From: Basidiobolus meristosporus CBS 931.73 | Taxonomy: Eukaryota > Fungi > Basidiobolomycota | DNA length: 64,000 bases | Assembly: GCA_002104905.1 (NCBI GenBank) | Contig: MCFE01000109.1 | Coordinates: forward strand, 1 to 64,000 | Direction: 5' to 3' | Shown: positions 1,070 to 47,127 of the stretch, in pieces | Layout: every line of letters starts with the position of its first letter | Numbering within the stretch: position 1 is the stretch's first letter | Made by a program: the position numbers and the translations under genes | The notes under the pieces: generated by a model | Seen by the model: the letters and a program-made list of their open reading frames with translations, nothing else | What the model was told of the DNA's origin: nothing | Databases searched by the model: none

Positions 1070-1131
1070 AAAAAAATGTCCTCCGAAGAGGGGTCCACTC
1101 AAGATTTACGTGTCATCCTTGTGCAGGGGCC

Positions 1132-1162
<31 letters not shown>

Positions 1163-1195
1163 TTCAAGTGTCAGAGGTTCCGAAGAACTTGACAC
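1070..1195 (-). ncRNA. U6: U6 spliceosomal snRNA
   Basis: Reverse complement contains AATTGGAACGATACAGAGAAGATTAGCATGGCCCCTGCACAAGGATGACAC (ACAGAGA box, AGC triad, ISL), a 5' hairpin (GTGTC/GACAC stem, TTCG loop) and a T7 Pol III terminator. A TATAAAA lies about 25 bp upstream. Confidence 0.97.
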
Positions 1196-3853: not shown

Positions 3854-3926
3854 CGAGGCGCATGGGACTCGAACCCACAATCCCCAGATCCGAAGTCTGA
3901 TGCCTTATCCATTAGGCCAACGCCCC
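3854..3926 (-). tRNA. tRNA-Arg (anticodon TCG)
   Basis: GGGGCGT...GCGCCTC-G acceptor stem, anticodon arm TCAGA-ctTCGga-TCTGG, T-loop TTCGAGT; 73 nt. Confidence 0.95.
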
Positions 3927-28541: not shown

Positions 28542-28947
28542 CATTCTCAACTGAACACTCATTGTATGCATATTGTAGACTTGTGTCACGACTAGTATAT
28601 AATACACACGCCACCGACACTTCAGTTCACCGTTTGACTGGTATTGAACAATAAAAAGCTAGGAGTTCGACGCAACACCAGCATCACCATCACCATCACC
28701 ATCATCAGGCCCCTTTTTTTCCTATTCCAAGAGAAAATCTTTTCCTGATGGATCACGTGGATTGGATCTTGGGTTCATGGCAAAAAGTTTGGAGATCGGA
28801 AACAAAAGTGTTGCTATGGGATAGACGAGTTCTTTCTCTTCTGAACTCAGTTCAACCACATTTGTAGACAAGGTTAGCGAATCCATGAATACATCCATTG
28901 ACCTGCACAGCTTGCTGACCCCCAATCTTCTTCCCCAGTCTTGAAAA

Positions 28948-29430
28948 ATGGAGGCTGTCCAAACTTTCGGTCGTAAGGTGGGTGCACTATCCTCGGACAA
29001 CGCCGTTGTTTCCCTTTGTTAAATCTTTTCTCTCCAGAAAACCGCTACTGCTGTTGCTTTCTGCAAACGTGGAAAGGGTATGATCCGTATCAACGGTTCC
29101 CCCATCGAGCTCGTCGAACCTGAAATCCTCAAGTTCAAGGTCTACGAGCCCATCCTCATCCTTGGTGAAGACAAATTCGCTGATGTTGATATCAGAGTTC
29201 GTGTCCGTGGTGGTGGTCACACTTCTCAAATCTACGCCATCCGTCAAGCCATTGCCAAGGCCATCGTCGCCTTCTACCAGAAGTTCGTTGATGAAGCTTC
29301 CAAGAAGGAGATCAAGGAGAAGCTCGTCGCCTACGACAGAACCCTTCTTGTCGCCGATCCCAGACGCTGCGAACCCAAGAAGTTCGGAGGTCCAGGTGCT
29401 CGTGCCAGATACCAAAAGTCCTACCGTTAA
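28948..29430 (+). CDS. RPS16: 40S ribosomal protein S16 (uS9); intron 28978-29037
   Basis: [10 protein letters not shown]|KTATAVA...[15 protein letters not shown]...[17 protein letters not shown]. Confidence 0.98.
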
Positions 29431-29980
29431 ACCAGATTGGTTTATTGGTGTGTTTGTCTCTCTTTTCTGTAACATCGAGATTCTGTTGGAAATCCAATAA
29501 ATTCACTTGTCCTTTGCGATGAGAAGCCAAAACTCTTTCATTATCGAAGTCGTCTATCGTGATGCGTTACTATAGTTCCTTGGTGGTGCAGCATTGCTGC
29601 TATTCCCTGGCCATATGAGATGATATATTTCTCCCGCCCGAGTGATTTGTTTCGTTGGCAGCATTCCTCGAACCCTTGTGTTCTGTTGTCTGATGACTAT
29701 TCCTTTCCGACGAGGGCCAAACATTCCCGAGCACCACGACAGAAGCAAATTTTGGATTTCGTCCACGAGGGATTTCGAATAAACCAAAATCACAATAAAT
29801 CATGCGCATCAGAAAAATTAAGCAATTTATCGGGGAAATAACCAAGTAAAAATGACTAATGGCCTGCGATCAGAATTAGAAAGAAAATCGAGGAAAATAA
29901 TTGAGGCTTGCGTTATAAATGTTTTTGCTCTTGTGAATTCTCCTTCTCTTTCCCTCAGGTTCTTGTTGCTCTAGCAAACC

Positions 29981-30056
29981 GTATCCTTTGTGTTGGTTAC
30001 ATCCATCAATTCGCCTCATCCATTTGTTCAGTTGTTCCTTAACATTGTTTGTATAG
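29981..30056 (+). other. U12-type (minor) GT-AG intron in the RPL13 5' UTR
   Basis: 5'SS GTATCCTTT, branch TTCCTTAAC at 30035-30043, TAG 3'SS 13 nt later and 3 nt before the ATG. Confidence 0.8.
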
Positions 30057-30059
30057 AAG

Positions 30060-30758
30060 ATGAAGCACAACAATCAGTTGCCCAACAATCACTTCCGCAA
30101 GGATTGGCAATTACGTGTCAAGACTTGGTTTGATCAAGCTGGTCGTAAGAAGCGCAGAAGACTCAATCGCGTCCAAAAGGCTGCTCGTATTGCTCCTCGC
30201 CCCGTTGACGGCCTTCTTAGACCTGCCGTCAGATGCCCCACTGTCAAGTACAACACCAAGTTGAGAGCTGGCAAAGGTTTCACCTTGGAGGAGCTTAAGG
30301 TAGTACCAGATCGCTCAGCATTCGCCGCCAACCGGTATTAACGATTTTGGAAACTCGGCTAATAGGAAGCCGGTATCAGACGCAAGGAGGCTCTTACCAT
30401 CGGTATTTCCGTCGACCACCGTCGTCGTAACAAGTCCGAAGAGTCCTTGAGCTTGAACGTCCAACGCCTCAAGGCCTACAAGGCTAAGCTCATCGTCTTC
30501 CCCAAGAAGGCCGGTAAGCCCAAGAAGGGTGACAGCGAGGCCGCTGAGCTTGCTGAAGCCAAGCAACTCGCCGGTGCTGTTATGCCCGTTACCCAAGTCT
30601 ACTCCAAGGAGAAGGCCCGCAAGGTCACCGAGGAGGAGAAGACTGCCAGCGCTTACGCTACCCTCCGTAACGTTCGTTCCGAACAACGTTACCGTGGTAT
30701 CCGTGAGAAGCGTGCCAGACTCAAGGCCGAAGAGGAGGCTCAAAAGGTCAAGAAATAA
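30060..30758 (+). CDS. RPL13: 60S ribosomal protein L13 (eL13); intron 30300-30365
   Basis: [17 protein letters not shown]...[12 protein letters not shown]|EAG...VDHRRRNKS...NVQRLKAY. Confidence 0.98.
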
Positions 30759-31149
30759 ATGTCAACATTTCTCGATTTTGATTCTTCCAGCAATACACAT
30801 TAATAAATATGCAACCTTATATCTGATCCTGTCTCATTATATATATGTGTGTATGTCAAAACATAACTCGTACAACCTGGTTTAAAGACCAAGAAGGAAA
30901 CTGCAACTGAGGTTAGGTCGTTAGTTGGAGGTTGTGCCATTCGATCATATCCGAGTGTGCGTATTTACAAACTGCATTCCTAACTAACTCTACACTTAGC
31001 TCTTAACCGATTCCTACTGTTTCCACAACATCTCATCATCTACTGTTCCACATCCATCAATTCAAGTCAGCATAAGAATGATTTGTTTTTTGGCAAAAGG
31101 AGATTTATTGGAGGGGATCAGTACATGCTTCATATTAATCCGAAGAGAT

Positions 31150-31548
31150 TTAGTTTTCTTGGGTACGAAGACGAGCGTTAGCGTTGGTAACCTTGACATT
31201 CAATTGTTGAGCGCGCTCGACAATGGAGATGCGGTTCTTGGAGCTGACGTTGTGAGCGATCTCGGCGGCATAGGTACGGTTTTGCATCAACAAAACCTCC
31301 AACTCCTTGACGCTGGAAACGACGAACTTCTTGAAGCCGTTGGGCATCAAGTGACGGGTCTTGCTGTTAGATCCATAACCGATCTTGGGCATAGGGATTT
31401 GTCCCTTGAATCTACGACGGACACGGTTATCGATACCCTTGGGCTTTCTCCAAGACTCCTTGACGGTCTTGTAGCGGTCAGATTGATGACGCTTGAAGGG
31501 CTTGGTGCGCTTCTTGACAATTGCGACCTTGTTAGTAGAGGAGACCAT
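31150..31548 (-). CDS. RPL32: 60S ribosomal protein L32 (eL32), probably preceded by a U2-type 5' UTR intron
   Basis: [15 protein letters not shown]...[17 protein letters not shown]...[12 protein letters not shown]; GTATGA...CTGAC...CAG immediately upstream of the ATG. Confidence 0.98.
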
Positions 31549-31857
31549 TCTGTAGAGTATGTCAGTTCAGCCGGAGTTCAGTTGGAATCAATGGATGGAC
31601 TCATACCTTGCTCACGAAGTCAGATGGATTTCCGGAAGAGAAAGAGGGAACTCTGCTTTTTTCCATAACTTTTATTGAGATTCTCCTGATGGATGATCCT
31701 CCTGGGATCACGTGACGTGAAAGAAATTTCTCCTCGACCATCCAACAACACCGCCAGGGTTTTGCGGGGTGCAGGAAATATATTCGGTCTCGGTGCTCGG
31801 AGTCTGGGATGGTGTCGATTCGATTCAACGAATGTACATGTATGGCACAATAGACGC

Positions 31858-31916
31858 TATCACATTAAGCGCAGAGTGTAGTTCTGGATATCACATTAAG
31901 CGTAGTGTAGTTCTGG
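31858..31916. repeat. Imperfect about 30-bp tandem repeat between RPS3 and RPL32
   Basis: TATCACATTAAGCG(C)AG(A)GTGTAGTTCTGG twice. Confidence 0.85.
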
Positions 31917-32010
31917 TATGAAGCAGAAGGTACTTTATTATCTAAATGACCATCAGGGAAGGATGACTTGGTAATAGTGGTCGTTTCGAGACGTGGCTTG
32001 GTGAGATGGT

Positions 32011-33084
32011 TTAAGCCTCCACTGGCTCAGCGGCGGATTCCTCGGCAACAGGAGCCTCAACCTTCTTTTGGAAATCCTCGGAGATGGGCTCGGTGACGAC
32101 GGGCTCGTCCTTGGGCTCCATGACGGTGATCATATCAGGAAGAGGGTTCTTGGGGCCAATCTTGCCGGAAGGATCCCAATCCAACATGATCTTGACCTTG
32201 ATACCAAGGACACCTTGGCGGAGAAGAACGTGACGGACGGCGGTATCGATGTAGTCACGAACGGGTTGACCGGAGTGAATCATGAAACCGTCGGCGAACT
32301 TCATGGCCTTGGCACGGGCGGCACGAAGCTTACCAGAGATGACGACCTCAGCACCCTTGGCACCAGACTCCATGGCGAAACGGAGAACGGAGTGGGCAGC
32401 ACGACGGACGGCAAGTCCGGCGAGCAACTTATGACGAACAGCCTCGCATTGGGCGACGGCGCAGAGACCACGGTTGGCAACACGCTCGGCATAAAGCTCG
32501 ACGGTGTTTTCGGGGAAGTTGAAACGCTTTTGAACGACGGAGGTCAATTCACGGATACGGCGACCCTTCTCTCCGAGGACATCTTGGGTGCGAGTGGCAC
32601 GGATGATGATTTCGGTGCGAGCGGGGGTGACGCGGACCTCGACACCGGAGTAGCCCTCTTCGGCGAGCTCACGGGTGAAGAACTCGTTGAGTTCAGCATA
32701 GAAAACGCCATCAGCGACGAACTGTTGGTAAGCAAAGATGGGGGTTAGTTCTTCTGTGGATACAAGCCAATGATGAAGAAGACATCAAGATAGAGGGGTG
32801 CGCGGTTCATCAGTGCATCAACAAATGGTTACGTGCATTATGCCACATTCCCGAGGGCAGGCATTCAAACAAGAGGTGTCAGAAAGGTTAGATTCTCATC
32901 AAATGGAACCGCGCTCACCCTTCTATCGTTGACTATGTCCAATCCCATCCATCAGCCTCCAATAAAGCCAATCTTCCTCGCTTCACGGAGAAGACGTGGG
33001 TTTATCCGAGGGCATTGAACGTCGGATCGTACAGAACGTGTGGTGATAGATTACCTTTCTCTTCTTAGAGATCTGGGCAGCCAT
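32011..33084 (-). CDS. RPS3: 40S ribosomal protein S3 (uS3); exon 1 33055-33084, intron 32722-33054
   Basis: [10 protein letters not shown]|[30 protein letters not shown]...[15 protein letters not shown]. Confidence 0.98.
32800..32914 (-). ncRNA. Putative intronic box C/D snoRNA
   Basis: Perfect 9-bp terminal stem GCGCGGTTC/GAACCGCGC closing box C (TGATGA), D' (CTGA) and box D (CTGA), inside an unusually long 333-bp intron. Confidence 0.75.
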
Positions 33085-44973: not shown

Positions 44974-47127
44974 ATGATGAGGCAGATAAGAAACTTCTTC
45001 AAGTCCACCGTCGCTGGTATTTCCTTGACCGCACTTGCATGCCATACCTCCGGAGAGGAAATTCATGTTTTGTATAGGACACGAGCCAATGAATTCACAC
45101 TTCTCCTCAAAAAGGGATCGTGCTGCCCAGAGAACCACGGAGAGGGAATTCCCGGACACATATAATGGCAAGGTCGCTGTTTCTTCCGAGTCCGGCGATA
45201 CCGAATTCGCTGTTGAACCCAACATTTCAATGTACCCTGAATTGGAGAGATACCAACTACTGGAAAAGCTGGGAGAGTAAGTGGGTTTTGCAAGGTTACC
45301 TATTCCCCCGTCGCCTCGCTATGAAACTAACTCCCCCAAAGTGGGGCTTTCAGCGATGTTTACAAAGCATTTGACAGGGTGTGTCAAAGGTTCGCGGCCG
45401 TAAAGGTGGTGCGAAAATTCCAACTCAACGCGGTCCAGGTAAGCGCAGCCTTTTACCACATGGCGTCCTGGACACTTATCGATCGGTTGGTGGGCTTAGA
45501 GAGGAAATATCCTGAAGGAGGTGACGATCATGCGCAACATCAACCACTGCAATGTAGCCAGGCTTTTGGACTTCAAAGAGACCAAGGATTTCTACTTTCT
45601 CGTCCTCGAGCTCCTGGAGGGGGGAGAGCTCTTCCACAGAATCGTCAAGCTCACGTATTTCTCTGAGGACCTTGCCCGACATGTAATCACTCAAGTGGCC
45701 AGAGGAATCCAGTATCTGCACGATGAGAAGGGGGTCATCCACAGGTAGACCAAGTCCGCGGCAATGGCCTATCTTACAGATGCTCATCATCCAAACCCTG
45801 ATATAGAGACATCAAACCAGAAAATCTACTATTTCAAGCGATACCCTATAGGTATAGAGATACCATGTCCGATGAACCCATCGAGTTGGATGAGGAGAAG
45901 CTGGACGAAGGCGATTTCGTTGACGGAATCGGAGGTGGTGGTATCGGCGTGGTGAAGATTGCCGACTTCGGGCTATCCAAGGTGGTATGGAATAGCGACA
46001 CAATGACTCCCTGCGGAACTGATATCCTTTTACATCTTTCCCGAGATACCTTTACCCCACCACTCGATCATGTCGATCCTTAACCTGGCAACACTAGGCT
46101 ATACAGCTCCTGAGGTAGTCCGAGACGAACGCTACAGCAAATCTGTGGACATGTGGGCATTAGGATGCGTGCTCTACACACTGTAAGTAGATCAAGGACC
46201 GGCCAGGCGTTTCGTTCGACTGACCGAGTTTATTAGATTGTGTGGATTTCCTCCTTTCTACGACGAGGAGATTCACGCGCTCACCGAGAAAGTGGCCATC
46301 GGTCATTTTTCCTTCCTGTCCCCGTGGTGGGATGATATCTCCGAGAGCGGTCAGTATTTCTCTATCGCCCCCAGAGAGCCTTCCCTTTCTAAACGGCCTC
46401 CTTTTTCACGGGTCTAGCCAAGGATTTGGTTTCCCAACTGTTGACCGTGGACCCTTCGGTTCGTTACACGATCGCCGACTTCTTCAGCCATCCATGGATT
46501 AAGGGAGAGGTAGGGTGTCATGTTAACCCCTCCCCCCTGTATGTGAAACATCTCTTGCTCATACTGCTTCTAATTCATCAGAAGACCGAGGATTCTGGCG
46601 TCGGTGGTGCCCATGACACAGTGCCGCCTGATTCGGATGAAGAACGTTCCATCGATGCAAATCACCAAACCAATATCCCGCGGAAAACTCGCCACCTTAT
46701 GCCTCTACCCGTCACCCCCAGTATCTCCATCAAGGAGGCTATCGACGTGTCCTATGCGGTTCATCGAATGGAGGATGAGGAGGCAGCAAAATACCGATTC
46801 CGGAATGCGGTGCAGGGACATCATGCGACTGGGATCATTTCCAACCCAGCCCACCATAGAGGATTCTTGGAGGTGCTGCAGAACAGTCCCAACAGCGAGG
46901 ACATAAATACCATCAATGCTGCCTTCCAAAATGCTGGGTTACCGGGCCGATACAAGCCACAGCGAAGGAGTCAATTGACCCCCGGGGCCTCCACAAGCTT
47001 GGCACCCGAAACAGCCGCTACCAAGCGCGACTTCGCAACTAGTAGGGCAGAGTCAGGTAGTGGATTTGAGTTGAGCTTGGACCAAGCAACATTGCTGAGC
47101 AGGAGGAAAGCGAAGCTGGATTGCTAA
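44974..47127 (+). CDS. srk1: CAMK-group MAPK-activated kinase (Srk1/Rck2 family), multi-exon
   Basis: [13 protein letters not shown]-like [16 protein letters not shown], family insert [38 protein letters not shown] (after U12 splicing), [21 protein letters not shown]. Confidence 0.92.
46022..46094 (+). other. U12-type AT-AC intron in the kinase activation segment
   Basis: 5'SS ATATCCTTT, branch TCCTTAAC at 46077-46084, AC 3'SS; removal gives the exact TPCGTVGYTAPE. Confidence 0.93.

Follow-up and report, generated by a model that had tools for sequence, protein, structure and literature searches.

We analysed a window of 64,000 nucleotides from Basidiobolus meristosporus CBS 931.73, which contains the gene for ribosomal protein eL13 (RPL13) on the forward strand. 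The coding exons were searched and translated one by one, and were concatenated for the calculations of dS and of the tree. Translation of positions 30060–30299 gives the eL13 N-terminus, and the segment 30366–30755 (130 aa) is 100% identical to a 210-aa 'ribosomal protein L13e' of B. meristosporus CBS 931.73 (PF01294). The product belongs to the Ribosomal_L13e family (PF01294), with 1093 homologues at E <= 1e-20. Exon 2 (30057–30299) consists of AAG, the ATG at 30060 and eL13 codons 1–80. It is followed by a U2-type intron in the coding sequence (30300–30365, GTAGTA...CTAATAG, phase 0 after codon 80), the donors of which differ in the paralogues, and by exon 3 (30366–30758), identified by homologue search, which carries codons 81–210 and the stop. 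Upstream of exon 2 lie a 76-nt leader intron (29981–30056) and a non-coding exon 1 of about 35 nt (29946–29980, with an inferred 5' end), which contains no ATG. An exact-protein look-up placed the gene on contig MCFE01000109.1 of GCA_002104905.1, and the recorded gene range begins at the ATG; a CDS-based catalogue therefore lacks the leader intron, as the preliminary description of this DNA had anticipated.

The eL13 gene is part of a cluster of four ribosomal-protein genes within 4.2 kb (28873–33084), which contains RPS16 (uS9) and eL13 and, on the opposite strand, eL32 and uS3. The gene order S16-L13-L32 was also observed in Basidiobolus ranarum (locus L007, 451–3108), and a related locus is present at L005 846–2389. 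RPS16 has a U2-type leader intron at 28873–28938, and the U2-type leader intron of RPL32 (31606–31550, minus strand) ends 1 nt before the ATG at 31548. CACGTG boxes are located 5' of TCT-like tracts in the promoters of RPS16 (28754–28759) and RPL32 (31709–31714).

The leader intron of eL13 carries the signals of the minor spliceosome. U12-type introns are defined by the donor RTATCCTT and the branch site TCCTTRAY (intronIC / IAOD, PMC7367187), and the intron at 29981–30056 matches both exactly, with the 5' splice site GTATCCTTT at 29981–29989 (matching RTATCCTT at +1 to +8) and the branch-point sequence TTCCTTAAC at 30035–30043. Its termini are GT...AG, as required for the U12 type (GT-AG or AT-AC), and the AG of the 3' splice site (30055–30056) lies 3 nt 5' of the ATG. 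The bases preceding the donor are ...GCAAACC, and the exon thus ends in ACC and has no AG; a missing AG at exon positions -2/-1 is the criterion that divides 'minor' from 'minor-like' introns (PMC11347168). The branch A, which is the second A of TTCCTTAAC (30042), is 14 nt from the last intron base. In U12 introns the distance from the branch to the 3' splice site is short, about 10–26 nt, and the window intron falls within this expected range. The preliminary description had proposed a U12 intron in the RPL13 5' UTR, 3 nt before the start codon, and this is supported by the match of donor, branch and AG spacing and by the retention of the signals in all eight eL13 copies compared below. It had also contrasted this intron with the U2-type introns elsewhere in the window: the signals do differ, but the intron is not the only non-U2 intron there, and the U2 donors seen in the window (GTAGTA, GTTAGC, GTGGGT, GTATGA and GTAATC) are looser than GTRNGT. 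Judged by its motifs and by comparison with other copies, 29981–30056 is almost certainly a real intron.

To relate these matches to chance expectation, we counted a joint pattern, consisting of a donor, a branch motif downstream on the same strand, and then AG or AC at the right distance. It occurred twice in the window, whereas 1000 shuffles that preserved dinucleotides gave 0.099 on average and reached 2 in 6 cases. The two sites are the eL13 leader intron and an AT-AC intron at 46022–46094, and both lie at gene-structure boundaries. We set aside the enrichment of single motifs as an argument, since the window holds RTATCCTT by itself about as often as chance predicts (5 found and 4.6 expected); for TCCTTAAC there is a mild excess (6 found and 2.1 expected). 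The intron at 46022–46094 is a second U12 intron, of the AT-AC subtype and located in a kinase gene (ATATCCTTTT...TCCTTAAC...AC). Its branch motif is at +55, the same offset as in the eL13 intron, and the two introns are otherwise dissimilar.

The position of the intron in the 5' UTR depends on where transcription starts. A TATA box (TATAAA, 29914–29919) and a TCT/TOP-like pyrimidine tract, CTCCTTCTCTTTCCC (29940–29954), a putative transcription start region, are located 5' of the donor. Across Basidiobolus, TATA[AT]A was found 67–72 nt 5' of the donor in 7 of 8 eL13 copies, and CTYTTTC was found in all eight, 35–41 nt 5' of the donor and 28–35 nt 3' of the TATA box; a CTYTTTC tract is also present 5' of RPS16, RPL32 and RPS3 in the window. 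We infer from this arrangement that transcription starts upstream of 29981, most likely in the tract about 35 nt 5' of the donor, which would place the intron in the 5' UTR. Exon 1 is 80–87% identical among the window gene, L005 and L007, whereas intron positions +10 to +39 are only 17–33% identical. Exact-protein look-ups for the window eL13 and three paralogues returned genome contigs only and no transcript contig.

These promoter features also bear on the reading that there is no intron at all, and that the conserved blocks are promoter or leader elements of an unspliced RNA, with ATCCTTT, for example, acting as a second TCT-type initiator. The TCCTTT within the donor does resemble the initiator motif YYCTTTYY. 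However, the TATA box is 67–72 nt from the donor but 28–35 nt from CTYTTTC, which fits a transcription start at the tract, and an initiator would not need the invariant G and TA that precede TCCTT. The two U12 motifs occur in the right order with a variable spacing (55–190 nt), while the distances from branch to AG and from AG to ATG are fixed. The leader introns of three paralogues contain ATGs (six in L001, three in L006 and two in L008), so that an unspliced leader would hold as many as 6 upstream ATGs; retained in the leader of a ribosomal-protein gene, these would do harm. In addition, the sister ribosomal-protein genes and the eL13 genes of outgroups share the same exon-intron layout with U2 signals. 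We consider the absence of an intron the most improbable of the readings weighed here.

To examine whether the signals are conserved, we searched for homologues with the exon 30366–30755, which recovered three more B. meristosporus paralogues and at least seven B. ranarum copies. Eight copies were compared, namely the window gene, L001–L003 of B. meristosporus and L005–L008 of B. ranarum; the B. ranarum copies P0006, P0009 and P0011 were left out. The preliminary description had suggested checking the leaders of orthologous RPL13 genes, and U12 signals are present in all eight copies examined. The donor GTATCCTT was found in every copy, with +1 to +8 invariant and T at +9 in 7 of 8; beyond +9, only 3–5 of the eight copies agree on the commonest base, and the sequence of the intron bodies is randomised. 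In seven copies the branch motif is TCCTTAAC or TCCTTGAC (TCCTTRAC), and in the remaining one it is TCCCTAAC, with one T>C change. The branch A is 14–21 nt from the 3' splice site in all eight copies, and the AG lies exactly 3 nt 5' of the ATG in all eight, each of which has A at position -3 of the start codon. The exon before the donor ends in ACC, ATC, ACT or CTC and never in AG, and the intron length ranges from 76 to 218 nt.

The conservation of these signals contrasts with the divergence of the genes that carry them. Pairwise dS between the coding sequences is 0.42–2.0, and the maximum-likelihood tree of the coding sequences has a length of about 3.2 substitutions per site, so that neutral positions could not have stayed invariant. 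As controls, we inspected U2-type donors. Those of the codon-80 intron in the same paralogues are GTAGTA, GTAAAC, GTAATG, GTATGT and GTATAG, and those of the leader introns of RPL32, RPS16 and their paralogues are GTATGA, GTAATT, GTACAT, GTTAGC, GTAGCG and GTATAT, all following AAG. Donors of the U2 type thus drift freely, both within the eL13 genes themselves and in the ribosomal-protein genes next to them, and the simplest reading of the comparison is that purifying selection has acted on exactly the U12 recognition sequences.

The same comparison makes it very unlikely that the intron is an ordinary U2-type intron with a donor and a branch site that merely look U12-like. Such a resemblance is conceivable, as TTAAC is one base from the fungal branch CTAAC/CTRAY, as the U2 donors of the window are degenerate (GTAGTA, GTTAGC and GTAATC), and as TCCCTAAC in one paralogue contains CTAAC. 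Yet donor positions +3 to +8 (ATCCTT) are invariant in all eight copies at dS 0.4–2.0, and true U2 donors of these genes and their neighbours vary there. The intron has neither a G at +5 nor an exonic AG, unlike all neighbouring U2-type 5' UTR introns, and the whole octamer TCCTTRAC, beyond the CTRAY core, is conserved 14–21 nt from the AG. The paralogue with the changed branch site (L002 2418–2497, B. meristosporus), in which TCCCTAAC replaces TCCTTAAC, has a weaker U12 match and a new CTAAC core, and this copy could be drifting towards the U2 class.

The paralogues also differ in their coding-sequence introns. The codon-80 intron was lost in L001 (2501–3133), L002 (2501–3133) and L006 (1501–2133), and the U12 leader intron was kept in all three; the L003/L008 lineage has a second coding-sequence intron. 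Intron loss that is 3'-biased and mediated by reverse transcripts classically spares the 5'-most introns, and the loss of the coding-sequence intron with retention of the leader intron in three paralogues fits this bias.

A further element, CATCCATY, recurs in the leader introns. The eL13 leader intron has two copies (30000–30007 and 30017–30023), and the element is present in the leader introns of all eight Basidiobolus eL13 copies, at +20 to +24 in 6 of them. As (A/G)CATCCATY it occurs on the sense strand of ribosomal-protein genes, within their first intron, which in most cases lies in the 5' UTR; this includes the leader introns, all of the U2 type, of RPS16 and RPL32, of their paralogues and of Conidiobolus eL13. 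Intron 1 of RPS3 has it in antisense. Of 23 CATCCAT matches in the window, 8 fall in the 4.5 kb of the ribosomal-protein cluster. Further sites in the window are at 28892–28898, 31591–31597 (minus strand), 31689–31695 (minus strand) and 32946–32952, and sites in other loci are at L001 1465, L005 2470 (minus strand), L006 935 (minus strand), L007 396 and 3201 (minus strand), L009 1155 and L014 1221. We considered CATCCATC as a U12-specific enhancer and ruled this out, because RPS16, RPL32 and Conidiobolus eL13 also carry it, in leader introns of the U2 type. A literature search for CATCCATC returned PCR-primer matches only. CATCCATY probably serves the ribosomal-protein regulon as a cis element, be it at the level of DNA or of RNA.

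We also compared eL13 genes of five outgroup taxa. Conidiobolus coronatus eL13 has the same layout, with a TATA box, TCCTTCTCTTTGC, an exon of about 45 nt, an intron with CATCCATT at +16, an AG and then AAC-ATG, and its leader intron is of the U2 type (GTAAGT...GACTAAT...TTTAG, L009 1140–1296). In Funneliformis the eL13 leader intron is likewise of the U2 type (GTAAGT...CTGAC...AG) and ends 5 nt 5' of the ATG. Lobosporangium, a Mortierella-like metagenome contig and Phycomyces have an AG 3 nt 5' of the ATG and no U12 motifs, with less certain intron boundaries, and their donors are probably of the U2 type. The Mortierella-like contig was the only sequence recovered, and a genomic one without U12 signals, when metagenomes were scanned with a 23-nt pattern of the eL13 start. 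For Conidiobolus coronatus, the public eL13 model of 145 aa seems to be truncated at the N-terminus (L009 1300–1988), and the frame is open from the ATG at L009 1300, 67 codons upstream, encoding the conserved start.

The leader intron slot of eL13 looks ancient, and the U2 type of the apparently homologous slot in Conidiobolus and Funneliformis implies a switch of intron class. Parsimony on the five taxa mildly favours the direction from U2 to U12. The accepted direction of intron class conversion is from U12 to U2, and in lineages in which minor splicing was reduced, such introns would in any case have been lost or converted. We regard as tentative, and rather doubtful, the proposal that, in the Basidiobolus lineage, an ancient slot, of the U2 type in other early-diverging fungi, changed from the major class to the minor one.

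The host is known for its minor introns. B. meristosporus is described as the fungus in which minor introns are densest (0.554%, n=249; PMC10639083), with 237 minor introns in another survey (PMC11347168), and minor snRNA genes of basal fungi have been reported in published surveys (PMC10639083, PMC11347168). Rfam scans of the window and eight loci at gathering thresholds found one major U6 and two tRNAs, and no minor snRNA gene. The U6 snRNA gene of the major spliceosome (1072–1193, minus strand; 79 bits) has a match of 122 nt to a 105-position model and adjoins a tRNA gene; the tRNA genes of the window are at 1305–1376 and 3854–3926, both on the minus strand.

As B. meristosporus has already been published as rich in minor introns, the eL13 leader intron adds to a known kind. 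It shares with the U12 GT-AG class (PMC7367187) the exact consensus motifs, the short distance from branch to 3' splice site, the GT-AG termini, the lack of an exon-end AG and a host lineage that retains minor splicing, and it differs in its probable place in the 5' UTR, 3 nt before the ATG. It resides in the same genome and has the same textbook signals as the catalogued minor introns of B. meristosporus (PMC10639083, PMC11347168). Published minor introns of ribosomal-protein genes are similar in being kept in several paralogues of a highly expressed gene in an early-diverging fungus, and in inviting the same regulatory speculation, but they lie in coding sequence, whereas the Basidiobolus intron is in eL13 and in the leader. 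The U2-type leader introns of RPS16, RPL32 and Conidiobolus and Funneliformis eL13 share with it the TATA box, a TCT-like tract, a short non-coding exon and a short intron with CATCCATY, with the AG 1–9 nt before the ATG. They differ in having AAG followed by GTATGA, GTTAGC or GTAAGT and CTGAC or ACTAAT branches, which vary between paralogues, whereas the Basidiobolus eL13 intron has invariant U12 signals. The eL13 case stands out for lying in the leader, for its gene and for how deeply it is conserved.

All these observations point to a genuine U12-type (GT-AG) intron in the eL13 5' UTR, which very probably is older than the gene duplications, has signals under selection and undergoes ordinary constitutive removal. 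Transcription would start in the TCT/TOP-like pyrimidine tract about 35 nt 5' of the donor. According to established knowledge of U12 splicing, the U11/U12 di-snRNP would span the short intron in recognising GTATCCTTT and TTCCTTAAC, and the non-coding exon of about 35 nt would be spliced to AAG-ATG. The intron would predate the duplications that gave rise to the eight eL13 copies in two Basidiobolus species, and purifying selection would have maintained its U12 signals. The minor spliceosome would remove it constitutively, and it most likely serves as an ordinary ribosomal-protein leader intron whose minor class is incidental.

A regulatory role has been suggested for minor introns since 2010 (PMC2846911). 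For eL13 it would take the form of a putative rate-limiting gate, as the preliminary description had supposed, in which slow minor splicing, along with the retention of unspliced RNA in the nucleus and its decay, ties eL13 output to how active the minor spliceosome is. The U12 intron is found in every eL13 copy examined, including the three without a coding-sequence intron, and no copy has a U2-type bypass; rate-limiting U12 splicing and exosome decay of unspliced transcripts have been documented in animal cells, from which the rate-limiting model derives (PMC4615840). However, descent from a single ancestral gene would by itself put the intron in every copy, and 5'-most introns classically escape 3'-biased loss. 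The window intron contains no ATG, so that its retention alone would not block translation and a retained-intron mRNA would still encode eL13. Moreover, the three other ribosomal-protein genes of the cluster use U2 introns, and the ribosome as a whole would therefore not be coupled to minor splicing. In Rhizophagus, the other minor-intron-rich fungus studied, no connection of minor splicing with proliferation was found (PMC10639083). A gating role is thus unlikely, and constitutive removal remains the preferred reading.

The eL13 leader intron leaves the knowledge of the minor spliceosome itself unchanged. Minor introns in UTRs have been catalogued, yet 'almost nothing is known' of them (PMC10639083); they are hardly studied, and CDS-based catalogues miss them. 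The eL13 intron offers a clean example, conserved to great depth, in a gene of very high expression. The U2-type slot in the closest outgroup examined would make it a well-defined case of intron class switch, and the neighbouring, near-identical U2-type leader introns would form with it a natural matched pair, with which one may ask whether minor splicing in fungi is slower or regulatory.
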